Source: Gracilinanus agilis (taxonomy: Eukaryota). Taken from it: 64,000 nucleotides of DNA. Shown here one piece after another: positions 44,460-56,830 of the stretch (positions within the stretch are counted from its first letter, which is position 1; each line of letters opens with the position of its first letter). Under the pieces are notes generated by a model. It was not told the DNA's origin. It was given only the letters and a program-made list of their open reading frames with translations, and ran no database searches. A program made the translations under genes and the position numbers. Where the stretch lies: contig NC_058135.1 of assembly GCF_016433145.1 (NCBI RefSeq), positions 278,688,276 through 278,752,275 on the forward strand, read 5' to 3'.

Positions 44460-45000
44460 AAATTGTATTATGAATTGCAATAGTATAAATTGGCTCACCT
44501 AAGTCTTTTCAGGTTTCTTTGAAACTATCCCTTTCAGCATTTCTCAGGGCACAATTCTATTCCGTTACATGCATATAACAAAACTTGTTTGTCCATTACA
44601 CAATTGATGGACACCCTATTATTTCCTAGCTTTGCCACCATAATCAAATTGTTATAAATATTTTTGCCTATCTAAGACCCCTTGCTGTTTCTTCCATCTC
44701 TTTGAGGACTGGTCCTAGTAGTAGTAGTAGTAGTATTGCTGGGTCAAAGCGTATACACAGATTAGTAGCCTTTTGGACATCATTTCACATTGGAGTTAAA
44801 CAGCTCCACCAAATGCATGAATGTGTCCTTTCCCCCCACAGCCCTACCAGCATTTGTCTTTTTCTTCTCTTAGCAAATGTACCAAACTGGTGGATAAAAA
44901 GAGGAACCTCAGAAACGTTTTTAATCCGCACTTCTCTATCTATAAGTAATTCCGAGCATTTTTTTTTCCTGTGGCTCCTGATAACTGAGATTTCTTTCCC
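44460..45000 (-). mobile_element. Old L1 fragment
   Basis: Reverse-complement ORF2-end motifs (CSELLIDREVRIKNVSEVPLFIHQ resembles the IREMQIKTTLRYHL region). Confidence 0.55.
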
Positions 45001-45379
45001 TGAGCACTGCTCAGGCACTTTCTGTCACCCTCCACTCCCCTACGTCCGTCCCTCCCCCTCCTCAGTAGAACGTAAGCTCCTAGAGTACCCGAACAATTTT
45101 TTTGTCTCTATCTCTTCACTCAGAAGTCAGTCAGTCAACCATGGAGCACTCTCTGGCATATAGAAGGTAGTTAATAAATGCTCTTTCTGAAGAAGAGATG
45201 CGGAAATGCACCTGTTCCCTTCCTTAGAGAAATGGAGGACAATCACTGGAATATCGCATCTGCTTTGAGCCTCAGTTGACATATTGCTCAGTTTTGCAGG
45301 CAGGAATCCAGAGAAAGCAGGACGAGAGCTTCTTGCCCAACCCTCTCTTTTCACCAGAGAGGCTACTTACGACGAGGAA

Positions 45380-46330
45380 GAGGAAATGAGCTGCTCAGGG
45401 TTGCCCAGAGAGCGAGTATCGGACTAGAGAGTAAGAACCCGGGTCCCCAGACCCCCGATCCTGCCTCCAGTCTGCCTCTCCTTCCAAAGGGAGGGCAGGC
45501 AGCATCACTGCGGGAACAGCCCGGGTTTGCCAGGGGGAGTTGGCAGTCCCTGGCCTTAATGCTGGGAGTTGCAGAGTTAATCTCTCCTCCAATCCGCCCC
45601 CCTCCTGCTCCCCAGATCGCAGAGAGGCCACCCAGGCAACCGGATGCAGAAGAGCGTTTCCTGTTTCCCGCTCGTGATCCTGATAGCAGCATCAGCCAGC
45701 GGGTCTTGCTTGGGGGCTGAGTCTTTGCATCTACTCCATCCCCTGCCTGGCGCTCAGAATCAGGGGACTCTCTGCGCTCTGCCTCCTTACACGCCTCCCT
45801 CCTGCGGTAAGCAAAGCCTTCTGAGCTGGGGAGGGAGAGACTAGGGCAAAAAGGGAAGGCACGGAAGCAGCTGGGGACGGGGGGGGGGGGCGCGGAGGAG
45901 GAGGGCTGTGCTGAGAGCCGTCTTAGAGACGCGTCCTTGTGCAGAAGGACCACAGAAGGCTACGGTGGGCGTGCCGTTTGGCATCATATATCAGAGGGGC
46001 CCCGGCCAGTCAGCCGCGATAACACCCTCATTGTTTGGGGATTTGTCTGGGCTCACACAACTAATTCACGCCTAGAACCCAAGCCTCTGGACCCTCGAGG
46101 CAGCGTTTGGCTCTTTGTACCAAAGCATGCGAGAATACTACTGATAAATCGATAGGAAAAGGCGGCCTGGATCAATAGAATGTCCGAGCTGGGGAGGGAT
46201 CTTAGAACGTGGAACAGAACATCAGAGCTAGAGATCTCTGATAAAACAAAACAGAACGGTCCATTTAGAAGAGGCTTTAAGGGCATCGAACAATAGTTGG
46301 GAGAGACGTTAGAACTCGCGTTCTGTAGAC
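45380..46330 (+). promoter_or_regulatory. CpG-island promoter with candidate first exon ending at 45806
   Basis: CpG-dense region. It has gctgggagttgcag at 45561 (resembles the ZNF143/THAP11-type GCTGGGARTTGTAG motif common at ZNF promoters), CCAAT plus a GC box at ~45588-45600, and a donor cg|gtaagc at 45806/7. Confidence 0.7.
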
Positions 46331-47576
46331 TCCGTGAAATGGGTTTCTGGAGTCTATGGACATGTTGGGGAACAATTTACTTCTTGATTTTTCACCAACC
46401 TGTAACTGAAGTTTCCTTCAATTATTTTTCAAACATGATTCTTCGAAAGGCTCCAGGGGCTTTGACAGACTGCTGAGGAATCTATGGCACCCCTCCCACC
46501 CCCCAAAAAAAGTTTTAAAATTGTTGCCTAGACTATAGAAAATAGAATGTCCCAGGTTAAAAAAAAAAAAAAAAGGAAAAAAAGGGGAAAAAAAGACCCA
46601 ATGTAGATGGTCAGAACCTTGGAAATCACTGAAGGTCCAACCCTCATTTTACAGTTAGAAAATGTGATTAGAGAGAATTGATTTATTTGCCCAATAGCTC
46701 ATAAGCATCAGAGCTAGGCTTTGGACAAGAATAGTTTGATGCTAAGCGGAGAGCTCTTTCCGTGACACTCTGCAGTTTTTCTCTCAAAAGCAACTTACAT
46801 TTATTAAATTCTTACTAGTTCTGGATTAAGAAGCCTGGGAACTGTTCCCACTAATTGGTAAGTTTGAGAATTTTTCTGTGCCTCAGTTTTCCCATCTGTA
46901 AAATGGAAACCATGGTACCTTTACATAGTTGTTGGAAAGGCAAAATCAAAATGTAAATGTGACTGCCTCTTGAGTTGCAAACAGCCCTATGTAAATATAA
47001 AAGATTGATCCTTTCTATCTGGACATTAAAACCAACCCCCATCCTACACACACACAGAAAAAAGACCCTTAACATCAGCTCCTTAAACATCAACTAGTAG
47101 AGGCAGCTTGATGGCTGAGTAGCTTGAAAGTTAAGCCTAGAAACAGGAGTTCCTGGGTTCAAATTTGTTCTCAGAGACTTCCTAACTGTGTGACCCTGGG
47201 CAAGTCACTTAACCCCCCATTGCCTAGAGTTTACAGCTCTTCTGCCTTAGAACCTATTGGTTCTAAGAGGAAAGGGAAGGTTTTGTTTTTTGTTTTTATA
47301 ATCACTTAGTCATTGTCTTGTACATAGCAGGTTCTCAATAAATGTTTCTTAGGCAAATTGCATCAGGAGCTGAAGCCAGAGCCTCGGACTCCTGAACTGG
47401 TATGTTTTTCGATATACACATGTTGTGTCCAGATCTCTTTCTATTGTCTCCTTGTCTATCTTTCTTCTCCTTTCCCTCAAACACTTCTCTCTCTTCTCTC
47501 CTGGTTCTCTTATCCTCCCTTGCTCTCTTCTGACCCTGATCCACTTACTTTTCTCTTTTTCTCTGCCTTTCCCCAG

Positions 47577-47724
47577 GCGCATGGCCCCCTGTTTCTGATG
47601 ATGTTAGCATTTGAGGATGTAGCGGGGCACCTCTACCGGAAGGAATGGCAACAACAGATCGCTATTTAAAGAGACCTCTACAGGGATGTTATGCAGGAGC
47701 ATTAGTAAAACCTGCTGTGTTTGG
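47577..47724 (+). pseudogene. KRAB-A box exon relic
   Basis: Long polypyrimidine acceptor and g|gtgagg donor (phase 1, typical of KRAB-A). Reads LAFEDVAGHLYRKEWQQQIAI*RDLYRDVMQEH**NLLCLG against the consensus VTFEDVAVYFxxEEWxxLxxxQRxLYRDVMLENYxNLxSLG. Stops at 47667, 47703 and 47706. Confidence 0.85.
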
Positions 47725-48103
47725 GTGAGGTGGTGGCTTCCTCTGGTAATGGAACTCAATTTTTACCTTTCCTGTAGTATAGTTTGAAGGCTCAGAGCTC
47801 TCAGACCTGTACCTTCATTCCCATCCTTTGTAATATCTACCTCCTCTTCCCTGAGAGTAGATCAAACATCCACAGGAGTCTAGGGATGAGGCTGGTCTCT
47901 ACTGGGCCTGTCCTTTCTTAAATATCAAATAATTTCCTATAGAAGAGCCTTTCTTTTCTCCTAAGGGAGGAGTTTCCTTAAATGGTCTATGAGAAAACTG
48001 CCATAAATTATGTTTCAAAAACTATTCTGTTATGCTCCAAGTGTCTTAAAGCATTAAGGAAATAAAAACTGTTAGGGATCTTAGAGAGCCCCTTTAAGTA
48101 GAT

Positions 48104-48293
48104 CAGTGGTTCCCAAAGATTTTTGGCCTACCTCCCCATTTCCAGAAAAAATATTCCTTAGCCCCCTGGAAATTAATTTTTTAAATTTTAATAGCAATTA
48201 ATAGGAAAGATAAATGCACCTGTGGCCATCACTACTTTTCTGGATCCTGCAGCACCCACCAGGGGGCGGTAGTGCCCACTTTGGGAATCACTG
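48104..48293 (+). mobile_element. hAT MITE, family B
   Basis: Ends cagtggttcccaaa / tttgggaatcactg; flanks aagtagat / aaatagag. Confidence 0.85.
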
Positions 48294-49369
48294 AAATAGA
48301 GGGTTCCAAAAAACTTATAAAACAGTAGCAGGAAGCAGCTAGGTAGTTCAGTGGATTAAGAGTCAGGCCTAGAGGCAAGCAGTCCTGGGTTCAAATTTGA
48401 CCTCAGACACTTTCTAGCTGTGTGACCCTGGGCAAGTCACTTAACCCCCATCGCCTAACCTTCACTATTCTACCTTGAAACCAAAACACAGTATTGATTT
48501 GAAGAAGGAAGGTAAGGATTTAAATGAAAGAAATGAAAGGAAATTGCAGCAGCCGAAAAGATGCATTAATTTGTGCATGTGTGTGTGTTTTAACTTTGTT
48601 GGGAAGATTCAGCAGAGGCCATGACTGTCCTAACTATACAGAGCCATAGCAGATCAAAGAGTTCTAGCATAGATTTTTTTCCCCTCAATAGTTTCTGTTC
48701 TGGTTGGGGAAAAAAAGATCAAAACTAAAAAAATAGTTTAGAAGGGTAACTAGGTGGCTCAGTGAATAGAGAGCCATACTGGGAGATCCTCAGTTCAAAT
48801 GTGGCCTCAGAAACTTCCTATCTTGGGGACCCTGGGTAAGTCACATCACTTAGCTCTTCTGCCTTGCAACCAGTACTTAGCATCCATTCTAAGATGGAAG
48901 GTAAGGGTGAAGAAGAAAAAAAAAAAAGACACTCCATCTCTCAGCTCCCAGCATTTTCTCTATTGTCTTCCTAGGTCTGGAATGTTCTTCCTTCTCATGT
49001 CCACTTCCTGACTTCTTTAACTTTCAACAAATCCTGGCTATAACCTTGCCTTCTAAAAGAAGCTTTTCCCAAGACCTTTTCATTCTTGTGCCTTTCCCTA
49101 AACCCTTGATTATTTCCTATTGATCCTATACATAGCTTGTTTGTATGTATTTGTTTGCTTGTTGTCTCCTCCATTAAATTGAGCCCTTTTGAGGGCAGGG
49201 ATTGTCTTTTGCCTTTTTTTTTAGCACATAGTATAATAAATGCTTATTGAGTGACTGTCAGAAATAATATGGGCCCATAGTTTTCATGTGACTGCCAAGG
49301 GGGTCCGTCACACACAAAAAGGTAAAGAGCCCATAACCTAGGAGATATATATGATGAGTCCAGCCACCC

Positions 49370-50060
49370 TTTATAACATTTTTATTAAATAAGAATAAGA
49401 GAAAATTCAGCAAAATCACCAAATAGCAATACAAACTGATATCATAGGTGATATTCTATACCCATGGACTGTCTTCCCCTTTTACATAGAAGCTGGAAAA
49501 GGCCTCTTATTTCTCTTCTTTGGGACCAAGATTATTCCTTATAACTTTATAACAATACTTTTCAATCAAAATTTCATCTCCAATTTTAAAAATTCAAATG
49601 AATTTTTCAATATTTATTTCTAATTTGAAATTTCAAATAAACATTTCAATATGCATTTCCATTTAAAAATTCAAATTAATTTTTATATTAATTTCAGTTT
49701 TGTGATTATGGTTCTTTCCATTTCCAGTTTGCATCAGTTCATGCTAGTCTTTCTATATTTTCCTGTACTCATCATATGCGTCTTTTCTTATGGCATAGTC
49801 ATATTCCATTGTGTACCACGATTTGTTTAGCCATTCTACGATCAATGGGCATCTACTTTGTTCCCAGTACTTTGCTACCACAAAAAAAAAAAGAGTTGCT
49901 AAAAATATTTTAGTGTATATGGAACCTTTTTTTGTTATTGATCTCCTGGAAAATATGCCTAGCACCAGAATCTCTGGGCCAAAAATGTACAGACATTTTA
50001 GCCCCTTTATTTGTATAATTCCAAAGGGCTTTCCAGAATAGTCGTGTTTTTATTTTTAAT
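49370..50060 (-). mobile_element. L1 fragment
   Basis: YTKIFLATLFFFVVAKYWEQSRCPLIVEWLNKSWY on the - strand. Confidence 0.72.
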
Positions 50061-50082
50061 AGTTTATTCCTTCCATTTGTAG

Positions 50083-50212
50083 ATATCTCTCTTTCCAAAC
50101 CAGACTTCATCACTCAAATGGAGAAAGGGGAAGAAACATGGAATTGGGAAGTTGCCACAAAAACAAAAGATCCCAAGGGACTCCCCAGCTGGAACAGAAC
50201 TTGGGAAACCAG
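50083..50212 (+). pseudogene. KRAB-B box exon relic
   Basis: tttgtag|at ... ccag|gtgagt; reads DISLSKPDFITQMEKGEETW against the consensus SKPDLISxLEQGEEPW. The 130-nt length breaks phase 1-1 symmetry. Confidence 0.72.
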
Positions 50213-51048
50213 GTGAGTCCTAGTAAGTGCCTGAATATTCCCTTCCAGGTCTTATACCCTCTGTTGTCATACACTATCATCTTAGATTCTCTTAATCCCA
50301 CTGTTGAAAAGATCCTCACTTTGACAAACTTTCCCACTAAATTTAGACAAGGTCTTCTATATCTAAGAGGATGGCATAATTTGGACCAGCAGCAGGGTTA
50401 GGAGGGCTGGGGGACTATAAACATTTAATTCCTAGTATTGCATTTTAGGAAGGGTTCTGATAAGCTAAAACTTTCCTAGGTGAGCAGGTAGGAGGGTGCA
50501 GTGACTTCAGTTTGTTATGTAAGGATCATTTAACGTTTCTTTATTCAATTCACACCTACCAAGCACCTACCAAGCATAGGCATCACCCAAAGTGCCTTTT
50601 CTTTTCAGATTACCTTCATTGACTCTATATATGTCTTTTGTGGATATGTTGTCTCCTCAAGGAATTCACTATCTAATTGGGGCCAAACTTACACCTCTAT
50701 GCAATTAATAAGAAATTGGTTACTCTAGTTAGAGAATTATGAGAGGCTCTTTATCGTCAAAGCTCACATTTGTGTGACCCTAACAAATTCCTTCCCCTCT
50801 CCTGGCTTCAGAATCATCTGAAAAATAAAGAGGTTGAACTAGATGGCCTCTAAGATCCCCTTCATTTCTAGATCTATTATTATATGTCATCCATCTTTAA
50901 TAGCCTTCTCACACTAATAATTGGCAATTCTATAATCAATTGCCTCAATGCTCATGATGTTAAAAAAAAAGGTGAGAAAATAGATGATATATACATACAT
51001 ACACATAGATGATAGCTAGAGAAATGGATGGTCAAAAAGACAGACAGA

Positions 51049-51241
51049 GGGCAGCTGGGTGGCTCAGAGGATTGAGAGTCAGACCTAGAGATGGGAGGTC
51101 CTAGGTTCAAATCTGACCTCAGACACTTCCCAGCTGTGTGACCCTGGGCAAGTCACTTGACCTCCATTGCCCACCCTACCCACTCTTCCACCTATAAGCC
51201 AATACACAGAAGTTAAGGGTTTAAAAAATAATAAAAATTTT
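51049..51241 (+). mobile_element. Young SINE
   Basis: TSD aaaaagacagacaga. Confidence 0.88.
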
Positions 51242-51459
51242 AAAAAAGACAGACAGAAAAACAGTCTTTCCCCCCCTTTAATTTTATTAACTGATAGATA
51301 AGTCTGCTATTGACATAGCACAGAAACATGAAAGTAAAAAAAGTACTCAATGCTGAAGGACTGACCTCATTGACCACCCAAGTCTGAATGTCTATTTGAG
51401 ATCAACAAGGAGGGTGAATTCATCCTCGGAGAGAGACCAGGAAAAGGCCTCCCAACATA

Positions 51460-52130
51460 GAAGAATAAGAGCCACACCCCAAAAGATAACATGTTCAAAG
51501 GCTATGATCAGGCAATTCTCAAAGAGGAAAATCTAGCTGTCAACAACCAAATGAAGACACTTCTGTCACTAAGAATAAATGTACATCAACACAACTCTTG
51601 GAGGTTCTACCTCACCCCCATCAAATTGTCAAAGCTAAGAAAATAGCAATTATTACAGAGACTGTATGTCTAAGACACTAATGTGCTGTCAAGTTAAGTC
51701 AGTAGACATTTATTAAGCACCATGTGTCTAAGAACATTTATTACAGCACTTTTCATTGTAATAGAGAATCGGAGACAAAATAGGTGGCCAACAATTCAGG
51801 AATGACTGAATAAATTATGATATGTGTAAATGGAAAGGGATTTTAGTATGCCATAAGAAATGATGGATATGGTGGAGTTAGAGAAATGTGGGAAGATATG
51901 CATAAATTGATACTAAGTGCAGATCCAGGAAAACAATTCATATGATGATTATAAAAAAATAATGTGAGGGGGAAAAACTGAAAGCAAGCAGAATCCTGCC
52001 CCAAAAAGTGATAAGTAATAACTTCAAAAGACTGAAGATAAAATGTATCACACACCTTTGCAGGAAGAGTTAATGGACTAGTGGTACAAAAGAGATATGT
52101 ATTTGCTGATGAGGCCAACAATTTCATTTG
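51460..52130 (+). mobile_element. Old L1 3' fragment
   Basis: caggcaattctcaaagaggaaaatctagctgtcaacaacc...gaggttctacctcacccccatc motifs. Confidence 0.6.
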
Positions 52131-52134
52131 CTTT

Positions 52135-52333
52135 TTTTTTTTATTCTTTTTTTTTAAACCCTTAACTTCTGTGTATTGGCTCTTAGGTGGAAGAGTGGTA
52201 AGAGTGGGCAATGGGGGTCAAGTGACTTGCCCAGGGTCACACAGCTGGGAAGTAAGTGTCTGAGGCCGGATTTGAACCTGGGACCTCCCATCTCTAGGCC
52301 TGGCTCTCAATCCACTGAGCTACCCAGCTGCCC
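52135..52333 (-). mobile_element. Young SINE
   Basis: Reverse complement of the same family. Confidence 0.85.
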
Positions 52334-52697
52334 AATTTCATTTGCTTTTGCCTGACTAAACGTATTTGTTACAAAAGAGAACTTCCACTGGAGTAGGAAA
52401 ATAGGAGAGTGGAGAGAGCTAGGTCTGTTACTATATAGTGATAGACATGGAGGGGAAAAGGAGCATTGATTTAAAAAAAATTTTTTTAATTAAAAACATT
52501 TTAAGTGTCCTTAAGAATTCCAGGTCTACACTGAACAGGACTAAGGAAACTCCTTTCTTCTGATCACATGAAGGGACTTTAGAAACCATCTAATCTACCC
52601 CCTTTCTTTTGCAGATGAAGAAACTGAGGTTTAGGAAAGTAAAGGAATTTTCCCAAGGTTACATCACTAGTAAAAATTGAGTTAAGATTAAACTCAA

Positions 52698-52836
52698 CGG
52701 GAGGTCCTAGGTTCGAATCTGGCCTCAGACACTTCCCAGCTGTGTGACCCTGGGCAAGTCACTTGACCCCCATTGCCCACCCTTACCACTCTTCCACCAA
52801 GGAGCCAATATACAGAAGTTAAGGGTTTAAAAAAAA
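52698..52836 (+). mobile_element. 5'-truncated young SINE
   Basis: TSD aagattaaactcaa. Confidence 0.88.
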
Positions 52837-53073
52837 AAGATTAAACTCAAGTCTTGAGACTCCTATAAGAATAAAATTCCATCCTTATACTCCAAAGACA
52901 TCACTTTTCTAGGCATTCATTCTGACCAATCTAGGAAGGTTCTGTACTTTGTTCTGAAAAGGGGATGGGATTTGAGAATTCTTTTTGTTGTTGTTGTTGT
53001 TTCTGGCTTCAGCAATTATTAGATGGCCTTCCTGAATTTATAAGTCTCAAATGTATTCATCTCTTTATTCCAG

Positions 53074-53772
53074 CTGAAGACTGGCGAAAAATGAGAAGGG
53101 TTATCAGCTGAAATGTCACATGTATGAGTACTCTCAAGGGATGTGCACAGGAAGGTCCTAAGAGGTGAAGAAAGTTCCTGGATTATTGGAAGAGCCCGTG
53201 TGAGTTAGTGCACTTCAGAAAAGCAGCAGGGAAAAGTCTCAGGGAGCAGGTAGAAAAAAAAAATCTCCCCAAGGTAAGGGATCTGGGGAACCTTGTTGTC
53301 ATCAACCTTAAAACTAAGGCCAAGTTTTGAGAAAGTCCCTATCTTTAGTGAATGTGAGAGAAGCTTCAGTCAACATTCCAATCTTTAAAAGTATCCAAAG
53401 ATCCATTCAGGGGAGAATGCTTCAAGTGTGTGGATTGTGAGAAAGGGTTCACTTACAACTATTTGTACATTAGAATCCATACCAGGAGAGGGGGAAAAAA
53501 AAAAACCAACCCTGAAACCTACAAAAGTCCTGAGAGTGGGAAAACCTTTAGTGAGAACTCCAACATCAAAAAACCTAAAGCAGGAGAGAAATCCTACTTT
53601 CTGTCTTGTACTGAGAGTGGAGATTGGTTCAGTGTGAAATCATCCCTCCTTATCCACCAGAGAATCCACACGGGAGAGATACCCTATCAATGCCCCCAGT
53701 GTGGGAAAAGCTTTACTCACCGTACAACGCCTATTAATCATCCAAGGCCCCACACTGGAGAAAAACCATCGA
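53074..53772 (+). pseudogene. Spacer plus decayed C2H2 zinc-finger array (terminal exon of the dead KRAB-ZNF gene, 5' part)
   Basis: Acceptor ctctttattccag at 53073. Finger remnants include CERSFSQHSNL*, CVDCEKGF and SSLLIHQRIHTGEIPYQCPQCGKSFTH...HTGEKP, with lost Cys/His residues, stops and frameshifts. Confidence 0.85.
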
Positions 53773-54077
53773 CAATCAGTTCTGTTATAACTCTTGTTTT
53801 GAAAATGGGAATCTGCTCCGATATGATTGCTCTGTTAGGCAATAATTTGACCATAATGCTAATTCTGGTTTGCTTATGCACAATTTCATCTGCAAGAAAC
53901 AGCTAGAATGAAGAAAACTGTACCCAGCTGAACGGAGCCACAAAACATACATACTTTAGATATCTACCAGCTACTTCACTTCACCATCTGTTATCTTAGA
54001 AGGTTGTTTTATTATTTTTTTTGTGTGTGAACTTTTCTATATTAAAAAAAAAAAAACACTCATTCCACATCCCAAAC

Positions 54078-55844
54078 ATGTCTAAGCGTCCGGGTTCCAA
54101 AACACCAAACAGTGGTGGCAAAAGGAAAACTTTCAGCATCGAGGAGAAACTTGAAATAATAAAGCGTTTTGAAAGAAACGAGAGAACGTGTGATATCGCC
54201 AGAGCCACAGGCATAAAGGAGTCCACCTTGAGGGCCATCAGAGACAACGCTGTAAAAATAAAAGAAACGTCGATGACGGGAGTAACTACGATTTCTGCCA
54301 AGTCAGTAAGGATAAGGCCTAAAGAAATTGCAGAAATGGAAAGACTGTTGAGCATATGGATCGAAGGGAAAAAGTCGAGGACCACCTTTCTCACAATCAA
54401 AGGAAAAGCACTCTCTATTTACGCGGATCTAAAGCGGAAAGCACCAAATCCGGCGGAAGTGGCGCCTTTTAGGGCTAGTTGCGGCTGGTTCAGTGGTTTC
54501 AAACATCGCTACAATTTCCAAAATCTTCAACTGTCGGGCGAGGCCGCCAGCGCAGAGCATAAGGCCGCCAAGGAATTTCCAGCCGTGATACAGAAATTAA
54601 TTAAGGAAGAAGGCTATACGTTGGATCAAATTTTCAATTTCGACGAAACGATTATCTATTACAAACGCCTGCCTCGAAGGACCTACATCTCGAAGGCGGA
54701 GAAGCACGCCCCAGGATATAAGTCCTCTAAAGATCGCTTAACTGTGATGTTCGGCGCCAACGCCAGCGGAGACTTGAAGCTAAAGCCGGTGGTGGTTTAT
54801 CGCTCCGACAATCCACGAGCCTTGAAAGGCATCGTGAAGGCCAGCCTCGGGGTCCATTACAGGTATAGCAAGAAAGGAAAGATGACGGCCCAAATCTGCA
54901 TTGATATTTTTGCCGAATTCTTCCCTGTTATTGAGTATTATTGCAAGAAAAAGAACTTGGCTTTTAAGATTCTGATCATCATCGATAATGCACCGAGTCA
55001 CCCCCCAACCATTGCGGAACTCAACCCGAAAGTCAAATTCGTCTTTTTGCCTCAAGAAACCACCTCTCTGATTCAGCCCCTGAATCTAGGGGTGATGGCC
55101 CTGTTTAAGGCCTACTATCTAAGGAGGACATTGAAGATGTTAATTGCAGCTACCGGAGGTGAGAACGCGGAAACGGCTCTCGAATTCTGGAAGAGATTTA
55201 ACATCAAGATGGCCATCGATATCATCGTGGAAGCCTGGAACGACGTGACCGAAGAGTGCTTGCATCACGTGTGGAAGAAAATGCTCCCGAACTTGATTCA
55301 GGATTTTGAAGGAGTGGAACCCGCGGAGCAATTGAAAAAAATTAAAGCAAACTGTGTTGATCTGGCAAAACAAGTTGGATTCGAGGAGGTGGAAGATGAA
55401 GATATAGATGAGCTCTTAGAACCTCACTCTAGCGACCTGAGCACAGAAGATTTGCAACAGCTGGCTGATGGCCAAGCGGAGGCCGAAGATGAAGAAGACG
55501 ACGATGACGATAGTGAAAGCCAGAAGGCTACCCCGAGACAGCTTGACACTTCGCAGTTATCGGGTGTTTTAAGTGTCATCGAAAAACAGTTGCAATGGCT
55601 TGAGGATAATGATTACAACGCGGAGCGGAGCAGAATAGTCGTGCATGGCATCCGCACGAATTTGGAACCATACAGGCAGCTTCTTTATGAAAGGAGGAGG
55701 CTAGCAAAACAGCAGAAATTGGACATATATTTTAAGCTAGTACGGAAGAGACACCTAGAGGACAACGAGCCACACCCGTCCACGTCTGGTGTTACCACTT
55801 CCCGTCCAGTTTCAGATAAACCTTCTTCTACCACTTCACAATAA
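54078..55844 (+). CDS. Intact Tigger-derived (TIGD/CENP-B-like) protein, 588 aa, probably domesticated
   Basis: ATG in ccaaacATGt. Contains a CENP-B N-type HTH (RKTFSIEEKLEIIKR...), a second HTH (EMERLLSIWI...FRASCGWFSGFKHRY), a DDE_1-like core (FNFDET, SKDRLTV, IIDNAPSHP, TTSLIQPLN), an acidic tract and a KQQKLDIYFK C-terminal motif. No stops or frameshifts in 1767 nt. Confidence 0.92.
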   Translation: MSKRPGSKTPNSGGKRKTFSIEEKLEIIKRFERNERTCDIARATGIKESTLRAIRDNAVKIKETSMTGVTTISAKSVRIRPKEIAEMERLLSIWIEGKKSRTTFLTIKGKALSIYADLKRKAPNPAEVAPFRASCGWFSGFKHRYNFQNLQLSGEAASAEHKAAKEFPAVIQKLIKEEGYTLDQIFNFDETIIYYKRLPRRTYISKAEKHAPGYKSSKDRLTVMFGANASGDLKLKPVVVYRSDNPRALKGIVKASLGVHYRYSKKGKMTAQICIDIFAEFFPVIEYYCKKKNLAFKILIIIDNAPSHPPTIAELNPKVKFVFLPQETTSLIQPLNLGVMALFKAYYLRRTLKMLIAATGGENAETALEFWKRFNIKMAIDIIVEAWNDVTEECLHHVWKKMLPNLIQDFEGVEPAEQLKKIKANCVDLAKQVGFEEVEDEDIDELLEPHSSDLSTEDLQQLADGQAEAEDEEDDDDDSESQKATPRQLDTSQLSGVLSVIEKQLQWLEDNDYNAERSRIVVHGIRTNLEPYRQLLYERRRLAKQQKLDIYFKLVRKRHLEDNEPHPSTSGVTTSRPVSDKPSSTTSQ

Positions 55845-56117
55845 CTCAGCAACTACAACCCTTCCAAAACCCACTTCTGCATGAAAACTTCAGATCTTTG
55901 CCAAGGTAAAGTGCCATATTTCTCACATACCTTCCTCATGCATAACTGTGGGCAGAGGAGGACTAGTCCAAATCCATACACTGCAATGTCCTCTACTCTA
56001 GCTCCTATGGGAAATAAGGTGAGGGCTCAGCGGTAACCCAAGGCTGTGGACCGCACCATTATCTATTGTAGCATTTAAAATTTCTTAACCACTTAACGTG
56101 TATAAAAACCATGGTGC

Positions 56118-56326
56118 GGGGGCAGCTGGGTAGCTCAGTGGACTGAGAGCCAGGCCTAGAGACGGGAGGTCCTAGGTTCAAGTCTGGCCTCAGACACTTC
56201 CCAGTTGTGGGACCCTGGGCAAGTCACTTGACCCCCATTGCCTAGCCCTTACCACTCTTCTGCCTTAGAGGCAATACACAGTATTGACTCCAAGACGGAA
56301 GGTGAGGGTTTAAAAAGGAAAAAAAC
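56118..56326 (+). mobile_element. SINE inserted in the 3' non-coding arm of the Tigger element
   Basis: TSD aaaaccatggt at 56105-15 and 56327-37. Confidence 0.9.
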
Positions 56327-56499
56327 AAAACCATGGTACCATTTTTCATGTTTCTGCCCTTTTTATATGTCACTGATTAAAGCTTTTTAGGGTTTCCCTA
56401 ACCCCATTTCCCCCATAACCCTGTGGCTTTTATTACCCAATTTTGCATAGTGTGGTGATTTTTAGGAATGCATATATTGCATTATAGCAGAACTGACTG

Positions 56500-56590
56500 A
56501 GAGAAATTTCATACATTGATCAGATCTCATCAAACATCAGAGAATTCATACAGGGTTAAGAAATCCTATAAGCATCCTCCGGTGTGATAA
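56500..56590 (+). pseudogene. Continuation of the zinc-finger array beyond the transposon
   Basis: Right after the right TIR the sequence reads RNFIH*SDLIKHQRIHTG (56502-56555), then a degraded linker. Confidence 0.78.
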
Positions 56591-56824
56591 AACAGCCTCA
56601 ACTCCAACCCCCTGAGGCACCAGGGACTTCAAACAGCTGAGAAAACTGAGAAAATTCTGAACACGGGGATGGCTTTGGCCAGAGAGTTGAAGTTTGTTGA
56701 ACACATCGAGATACATAGACTGAAAAGAGTTGGCCATGGGGCTTTGCCCGCAGAGGTGTAGCTGACATCTTTAGTGGCAAACAGGCTCCTTTCTGCCTCT
56801 CAGACATGACTAAGAAGTTGGCTG

Positions 56825-56830
56825 AATAAA
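56825..56830 (+). terminator. Candidate poly(A) signal for the ZNF-relic/transposase unit
   Basis: AATAAA about 1 kb past the transposase stop and just beyond the finger relic. Confidence 0.35.

Follow-up and report, generated by a model that had tools for sequence, protein, structure and literature searches.

Domesticated pogo/Tigger transposases, among them CENPB, JRK and the TIGD proteins, are a recurrent source of DNA-binding proteins, most of them without a known function. Here we describe a gene of this kind in the marsupial Gracilinanus agilis, where a 64,000-nucleotide stretch of chromosome CM028240.1 near 278.7 Mb (the window) contains a full-length Tigger element with UBE2L6 on one side and SERPING1 on the other. 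The element carries an intact transposase-derived open reading frame (ORF) and lies in the decayed finger array of a KRAB-zinc-finger gene. We put the probability at about 0.8 that this is a domesticated transposase gene, found in all marsupials examined, that is expressed via the non-coding chassis of its dead host. A second insertion of the same family, which we call paralog B, was domesticated in parallel elsewhere in the genome.

TIGD1-7, JRK, JRKL and CENPB have the same CENP-B_N, HTH_Tnp_Tc5 and DDE_1 domain set as the marsupial gene. Like it, they have one coding exon, are under strong purifying selection and have often lost catalytic residues, and the TIGD1 clusters are the nearest to the marsupial proteins in the atlas. 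The marsupial gene differs in occupying its own locus between UBE2L6 and SERPING1 and in being orthologous to none of these; protein searches did not identify it as the ortholog of any named eutherian TIGD, JRK or CENPB gene. In the POGK, KRABINER, KTIGD and KMARD fusions, as here, a DNA transposon lies in a KRAB-zinc-finger gene with a host promoter and upstream exons available, and at our locus too an in-frame junction from KRAB-B to transposase is possible on paper. The marsupial KRAB-A exon is dead, however, the annotated protein starts unfused from its own ATG, and the host appears to supply non-coding parts only.

SETMAR/Metnase likewise involves a Tc1/mariner-superfamily transposase that came under selection after inserting into or next to a host gene. 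It resembles the marsupial gene in its altered catalytic triad and in retaining DNA binding (a property that structural modelling predicts for the marsupial protein), and the fold of its transposase domain is matched by the marsupial protein. SETMAR, however, is a primate-only gene in which the transposase and a living host domain are translated as one fusion, whereas our pogo-family gene, by the protein searches confined to marsupials, lies in a host that has no coding capacity left. Finally, fission yeast has several pogo-derived paralogs per genome (Abp1, Cbh1 and Cbh2), as marsupials do. These have been linked to replication-fork stability at repeats (PMC5371812), which offers a functional analogy for a DNA-binding protein with a PCNA-interacting protein (PIP) box, but they were domesticated independently in a distant lineage.

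The marsupial gene pair is new to two catalogues of such genes. The list of domesticated pogo genes of Gao et al. 2020 (PMC7386202) holds no marsupial-specific gene, and the marsupial entries in the table of Cosby et al. (bioRxiv 10.1101/2020.05.07.082677) are KTIGD2, a KRAB fusion found in Monodelphis only, and TIGD-G8, a SCAN fusion of Australian marsupials. Identity with either was rejected because those proteins carry KRAB or SCAN domains; moreover, the SCAN fusion protein (P0126, equal to TIGD-G8) is only 42% identical to ours and groups elsewhere in the tree. No paper on the proteins described here was found in the literature searched. Together the two genes provide a natural experiment, in which two insertions of one family were domesticated, a catalytic aspartate was lost three times under continued selection, and the PIP box was retained.

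A transposase gene under purifying selection in all marsupials examined

The ORF occupies positions 54078-55844 on the + strand and encodes 588 amino acids from its ATG (607 if read from an upstream TTG at 54021), without a stop codon or frameshift. Pfam searches matched DDE_1 (1e-38), CENP-B_N (3e-07) and HTH_Tnp_Tc5 (1e-03), and this combination of two helix-turn-helix (HTH) domains with DDE_1 is that of a pogo/Tigger transposase. In RefSeq this protein and its marsupial relatives all bear the name 'tigger transposable element-derived protein 1-like'.

Intact ORFs that begin at the same MSKRPGSK start codon were found in wombat, Antechinus, Monodelphis, Dromiciops and Sarcophilus, in each case 7-8 kb upstream of a serpin gene; in Gracilinanus the serpin gene, SERPING1 by position, lies 7.7 kb downstream of the ORF. 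Colinearity with the window extends, in the flanks of these five orthologs, from about 44.5-47 kb to 64 kb and through both element junctions, which makes this a single ancestral insertion. The six genomes with the syntenic gene cover Didelphimorphia, Microbiotheria, Diprotodontia and Dasyuromorphia, and RefSeq cluster look-ups added koala, Trichosurus and Petaurus, bringing the species with this gene to nine. Full-length marsupial relatives are annotated at 75-90% identity, and only two loci of the family per genome are present in RefSeq. In gene trees each of the two paralogs is monophyletic (100% support), with a topology that follows the marsupial species tree. The transposase is domesticated in all marsupials examined, and its insertion predates the divergence of living marsupials.

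Since insertion the ORF has been under strong purifying selection. Pairwise ratios of nonsynonymous to synonymous substitution (dN/dS, or omega) among orthologs and paralogs ranged from 0.04 to 0.16, with both the Nei-Gojobori and maximum-likelihood methods. A Goldman-Yang codon model fitted to nine sequences gave an omega of 0.098, with a log-likelihood (lnL) of -7532.5 against -8234.1 at omega = 1, so that neutrality was rejected (2 x delta lnL of about 1400). By region, omega was 0.034 in the first HTH domain, 0.041 in the second, 0.074 in the DDE core and 0.037 in the C-terminal helices and PIP box, while the last 36 residues form a tail without constraint (omega 0.82).

The base composition of the ORF sets it apart from its surroundings, with a CpG observed/expected ratio of 0.94 at 46% GC against 0.05-0.2 in the flanks, and sharp borders between them. 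Moreover, dS between Gracilinanus and Monodelphis is 0.46, about three times the divergence of the flanks (12-17%). When changes on the Gracilinanus branch were polarised, AT>GC outnumbered GC>AT by 36:9 and CpG gains outnumbered losses by 14:4. Pure retention was rejected as an explanation for the high CpG content in view of this AT>GC-biased gain. The pattern looks like GC-biased gene conversion limited to the ORF, and it leaves the dN/dS result intact.

In Gracilinanus the protein is laid out as two HTH domains, an RNase-H-like DDE core, an acidic stretch, two C-terminal helices and the PIP box. In an AlphaFold model with a mean predicted local distance difference test score (pLDDT) of 75, the HTH domains form two bundles, the core has an alpha/beta RNase-H-like fold and residues 491-543 make up the pair of long C-terminal helices; Foldseek matches for this model were Mos1, Sleeping Beauty, the CENP-B DNA-binding domain and the transposase domain of Metnase/SETMAR. 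The first two catalytic aspartates, within the motifs NFDET and IIIDNAPSH, are invariant. The third position is aspartate in wombat, koala, Petaurus, Trichosurus and Dromiciops, asparagine in both didelphids and glycine in both dasyurids; a complete triad is thus found only in Diprotodontia and Dromiciops, and that of Gracilinanus reads D189-D303-N336. This aspartate was lost independently three times, twice in this gene and once in paralog B. Selection continued in the lineages that lack it, as omega is 0.041 between Gracilinanus and Monodelphis and 0.053 between Antechinus and Sarcophilus. Because purifying selection persisted after each loss, transposition cannot be the selected function.

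At the other end of the protein, the PIP box QQKLDIYF (residues 545-552) closes the conserved region in 9/9 orthologs. It matches the PIP consensus Qxx[ILM]xx[FY][FY] and is also present in the related frog copies that were aligned. The pogo transposase has been reported to bind PCNA, and Tigger to have a conserved PIP box (PMC5371812).

A second insertion and relatives outside marsupials

Paralog B is a second full-length insertion of the same Tigger family, flanked by a BRI3BP-family (TMEM109-like) gene and PRPF19; TMEM132A lies further on. In Gracilinanus it lies on the same chromosome at 284.03 Mb, 5.3 Mb from the first gene (A) (L002:9729-12022), and the locus was also retrieved from Dromiciops and Petaurus (L004, L005). 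It is intact and under purifying selection, and RefSeq has it in eight species, with 75-79% identity to the window protein; its third catalytic residue is glycine in all eight. The A and B loci resemble each other only in the ORF and the 3' arm, as far as the 3' inverted repeat; B, which lies in a strong CpG island, is bounded by inverted repeats of its own and has a 3' TA. These limits show that A and B are separate insertions of one family; segmental duplication was rejected, since the flanks differ, B has its own terminal inverted repeats (TIRs) and the similarity is confined to the element. Paralog B is therefore an independent insertion domesticated in parallel. In protein trees A and B are sister clades joined by an internal branch about twice the crown depth, from which we roughly infer that the two copies split well before living marsupials diverged.

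Neither the matches of a word-indexed search nor the best 150 of an exhaustive protein search included any eutherian protein. The nearest non-marsupial relatives are transposon-like Tigger copies in Trichuris, shark and lamprey at 48-59% identity. Closest are those of the whipworm Trichuris suis (57%), followed by shark (59%) and lamprey (P0008, P0009, P0007, P0010). So patchy a spread suggests that the family moved horizontally, with a possible connection to parasites. The only monotreme relative comes from the echidna Tachyglossus aculeatus (CM027602.1, L010:10001-11725), an intact 574-aa Tigger-type ORF of 49% identity without the DET and DNAPSH motifs, whose neighbours are a cyclin-family and an MRPL20-family gene. 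It was rejected as an ortholog, being non-syntenic and branching outside lamprey, shark and Trichuris, and may represent a separate monotreme domestication.

These results agree with a previous interpretation of the window made by a model from the letters and a list of ORFs (the sequence-only reading). It had proposed that the 588-aa ORF, which it described as free of stops and frameshifts, encodes a domesticated and perhaps marsupial-specific transposase. Of the refuting conditions it had named, each one that could be checked favoured domestication. The frame indeed reads through 54078-55844 and is intact at the orthologous site in five other marsupials, dN/dS is near 0.1 over the whole tree and falls to 0.04-0.05 in young pairs, and protein searches fit a marsupial-specific gene, the echidna relative being non-syntenic and outside the clade. 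It missed the second domesticated paralog, and from one sequence it could not have known of the third catalytic aspartate still present in Diprotodontia and Dromiciops.

Remains of a KRAB-zinc-finger gene around the element

The architecture and splice sites of the host gene are still recognisable on the + strand. The putative promoter and a non-coding exon 1 occupy 45380-45806, in a GC-rich stretch (45000-46500, GC 0.51-0.62, CpG observed/expected 0.4-0.65) that amounts to a moderate island. The donor CTGCG/GTAAGC at 45806/45807 (slashes mark junctions) is conserved in all three species whose DNA extends there, and identity of the exon core (45560-45806) is 92% with Monodelphis and 87% with Dromiciops, compared with 84% and 74% for intron 1.

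The KRAB-A exon (47577-47724) is dead, with in-frame stops at 47667, 47703 and 47706. These stops are common to all species covered, the TAG-TAA pair being present in six and the first TAA in five. Nonetheless, the exon is 87-95% identical between species, against 74-84% for intron 1 and 76-90% for intron 2; its polypyrimidine-CAG acceptor is conserved in 4/4 species and its donor G/GTGAGG in 6/6. On this pattern it was probably kept as an exon of the 5' untranslated region (5'UTR).

The KRAB-B exon (50083-50212) is open, in phase with KRAB-A, and ends in a phase-2 donor, CAG/GTGAGT, whose only frame mismatch is with the old zinc-finger exon. Its identity across five species is 91-99%, against 75-90% in the flanking introns, with the last 51 nucleotides and the donor invariant; the donor is conserved in 6/6 species and the acceptor AG in 5/6. 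Within the exon dS is only 0.13-0.18, dN/dS is 0.3-0.6 and all three frames are open. The low dS indicates constraint on the nucleotides, and, given this value and the three open frames, the idea that the exon is ordinary coding sequence is unsupported.

The old last exon begins at 53077, where the acceptor TTATTCCAG/CTGAAG is invariant in 6/6 species, and runs through a spacer and decayed C2H2 fingers to 53772. Pfam recognised zf-C2H2 and zf-H2C2_2 in an ORF at 53430-53903, and one finger (YKSPESGKTFSENSNIKK), now without its Cys and His ligands, is shared between species. Identity over 53077-53772 is 78-91% with 100% of the length aligned, compared with 75-89% and 25-77% aligned for intron 3. 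A further candidate acceptor just upstream of the ATG (TCTTAG, near 54000) was rejected, as its AG is present in didelphids only. On the far side of the element (56500-56830) a finger-like translation resumes in a decayed remnant, which ends with the polyadenylation signal AATAAA (56825-56830). The signal and its flanks are conserved in 5/6 species, Monodelphis having TATAAA, and identity across this segment is 95/84/80% to Monodelphis, Dromiciops and wombat, against 89/77/77% in the downstream intergenic DNA; in the two dasyurids it is 72-73%, slightly under the intergenic value.

Where covered, the exons align over 100% of their length, compared with 25-92% for introns in the Australidelphian species and 77-100% in Monodelphis. 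This is not a living KRAB-C2H2 gene: the KRAB-A stops, and stops, frameshifts and lost ligands in the fingers, are common across species. The shared stops and the shared ligand-less finger show that the host reading frame was dead by the common ancestor. At the same time, conserved exons, splice signals and AATAAA form the pattern expected of a transcript that is still spliced, and support the idea that the transposase took over its host.

The full-length element spans 53773-56499 on the + strand (about 2.5 kb without a later insertion of a short interspersed nuclear element, SINE). Its TIRs are of the CAGTCAGTTCTGCTATAAC type, 18-19 nucleotides long, and start with CAGT, or with CAAT at the 5' end in Gracilinanus and Monodelphis; in the window the arms at 53773-53790 and 56482-56499 are 18 nucleotides long with two mismatches. 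A TA target duplication is kept at both ends in Monodelphis, Dromiciops and wombat, where the 5' end reads TA/CAGTCAG... and the 3' end ...CTGACTG/TA; both TIRs and duplication are as expected of a pogo/Tigger element. In Gracilinanus the 5' TA became GA by substitution, and the 3' TA was removed by a private 15-bp deletion. When the element and one TA were taken out of the wombat sequence, the finger array became continuous again, which indicates that the element landed in the Tyr codon after a TGEKP linker.

The SINE occupies about 56117-56326 of the 3' arm, on the + strand, and has numerous further copies within the window. Monodelphis, wombat, Antechinus, Dromiciops and Sarcophilus lack it, as all five alignments skip from about 56113 to 56327; its insertion was recent and lineage-specific and has no bearing on the age of the element. 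In the dasyurids, a 130-bp duplicated fragment of the ORF (residues 259-308) lies about 1.3 kb upstream of the ATG (L009:8590-8715, L003:8634-8751). This local duplicate was the only further family copy or miniature inverted-repeat transposable element detected in 268 kb of marsupial DNA.

The sequence-only reading had described this layout correctly in nearly all respects. A Tigger element inside a decayed C2H2 array is borne out by fingers on both sides and TIRs mismatched at 2/18, and the three in-frame stops of KRAB-A are where it placed them. Its proposal that the transposase took over a dead host gene is consistent with the shared KRAB-A stops and with exons, splice sites, last-exon acceptor and polyadenylation signal that exceed the introns in conservation. 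Other points need qualification. KRAB-B was called phase-broken, which applies to its donor relative to the zinc-finger exon and not to its junction with KRAB-A or to its own open frame. The CpG-island promoter corresponds to a GC-rich region distinct from the island of UBE2L6, but only a moderate one. The loss of the TA and the SINE in the 3' arm are both real in Gracilinanus; neither is the sign of age it was taken for, given that the TA is kept in three other species and the SINE is private to this lineage.

Expression of the gene and the role of its protein

A full-length element inserted at a TA within a C2H2 finger codon, in the last exon of a KRAB-zinc-finger gene between UBE2L6 and SERPING1. 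As judged from conservation only, the transcript would most likely run from the promoter and exon 1 through the dead KRAB-A and KRAB-B exons to the last-exon acceptor at 53077. After the finger remnants and the 5' arm of the element it would reach the ATG at 54078, and its 3' end would be set by the host's polyadenylation signal near 56825. This would be an unusual route to a new gene, in which the host coding sequence died and its promoter, splice sites and polyadenylation signal were kept. Such a takeover of the host chassis is well supported, if not proven, by the comparative data. RNA-derived contigs encoding the protein were searched for and none was found.

Several observations weigh against this proposal. 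The wombat KRAB-B acceptor is AA rather than AG. A transcript using the 53077 acceptor would have an unusual 5'UTR, about 1 kb long and containing upstream ATGs. Moreover, a TATA- and initiator-like stretch conserved upstream of the ATG, together with the CpG-island-like ORF, leaves room for an internal promoter.

The domesticated gene could thus have a promoter of its own, in the 5' arm of the element or in the CpG-rich ORF, with the dead exons conserved for another reason, for example as a spliced non-coding RNA or as enhancers of UBE2L6 or SERPING1. At 54030-54077, just 5' of the ATG, TCTATA is followed by a variable AT-rich or microsatellite tract and then by CACTCATTCCACATCCCAAACATG; the arrangement is conserved in six species and, being TATA- and initiator-like, may be the original promoter of the element. 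In addition, the sharply bordered CpG richness of the ORF is like that of a germline-unmethylated island, and paralog B functions in a CpG island without a KRAB-zinc-finger host. However, the spacing of the TATA-like and initiator-like motifs varies, with microsatellite expansions in wombat and dasyurids, and part of the CpG richness is the recent biased gain in Gracilinanus. Enhancers would also leave the conserved GT/AG dinucleotides, polypyrimidine tracts and AATAAA unexplained. A further point against an internal promoter is that RefSeq holds 2-4 XP accessions with one identical full-length protein in 8/9 species (a single accession for paralog B in 7/8), which fits alternative 5'UTR exons. 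We consider an internal promoter unlikely as the main explanation.

A fusion protein as the main product appears more doubtful still. Starting from an ATG at 50118, the phase-2 donor of KRAB-B could be joined to a cryptic acceptor, CTTTCAG/C at 54136/54137, exactly in frame, rebuilding codon Ser20 and replacing residues 1-19. The KRAB-B exon is open and highly conserved, as noted above, and CTTTCAG is invariant in six species, though it is also coding there. For Gracilinanus and Sarcophilus, RefSeq also has a shorter isoform of 523/526 residues whose start is Met66, as expected if some transcripts splice into the ORF. Against this, the native ATG and residues 1-19 are kept in all 17 proteins compared, and no protein with the fused N-terminus is on record among RefSeq proteins in the 90% clusters. 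KRAB-A, the part required for KAP1 binding, is untranslatable in every species covered, which leaves KRAB-B alone with an in-frame junction, and the dS of that exon, as low as its dN, points to constraint on nucleotides rather than on a coding frame. Lastly, the locus might be no more than a transposon copy: its ORF could have been preserved by chance in a neutral fossil, or it could be an autonomous element that is still mobile. It does have full-length architecture with inverted repeats, and all three catalytic aspartates in the four diprotodontians and Dromiciops. The present data refute this view, given a fixed orthologous position in six genomes, an omega near 0.1 with neutrality rejected, a gene tree equal to the species tree with two loci per genome in RefSeq, decaying inverted repeats and target duplications, and the threefold loss of the catalytic aspartate.

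For the domesticated gene expressed through its host's chassis, the selected product would be a sequence-specific DNA-binding protein with two CENP-B-type HTH domains. Its RNase-H-like core appears structurally intact, without the third aspartate in didelphids and dasyurids, and is followed by a helical hairpin and a canonical PIP box. Like other CENP-B/TIGD-type proteins, the protein probably works at chromatin or replication forks rather than as a transposase. More tentatively, and with considerable doubt, we suggest that the dead KRAB-zinc-finger gene has been kept for more than about 80 million years purely as a non-coding chassis for this protein, which together with paralog B would constitute a marsupial-specific, PCNA-tethered DNA-binding factor. 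If so, the factor may target replication forks or remnants of the transposon family it came from, and the locus would be the mirror image of 'transposase capture', with a transposase taking the regulatory shell of a host gene. The model is directly testable in Monodelphis.

Turning to the putative promoter, the possibility that it is shared with UBE2L6 was rejected, because exon 1 of that gene (MTASIRAAK, minus strand, near 39.1 kb) and its own GC-rich island (about 38.75-39.5 kb) lie some 6 kb away. The most conserved part of the putative promoter, at 45640-45700, contains TTTCCTGTTTCC (GGAAACAGGAAA on the other strand), which is ETS/IRF-like. With a spacer of 3 nucleotides, TTTCCTGTTTCC is not a canonical interferon-stimulated response element. 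The two neighbours, UBE2L6 and SERPING1, are interferon-induced in other mammals.

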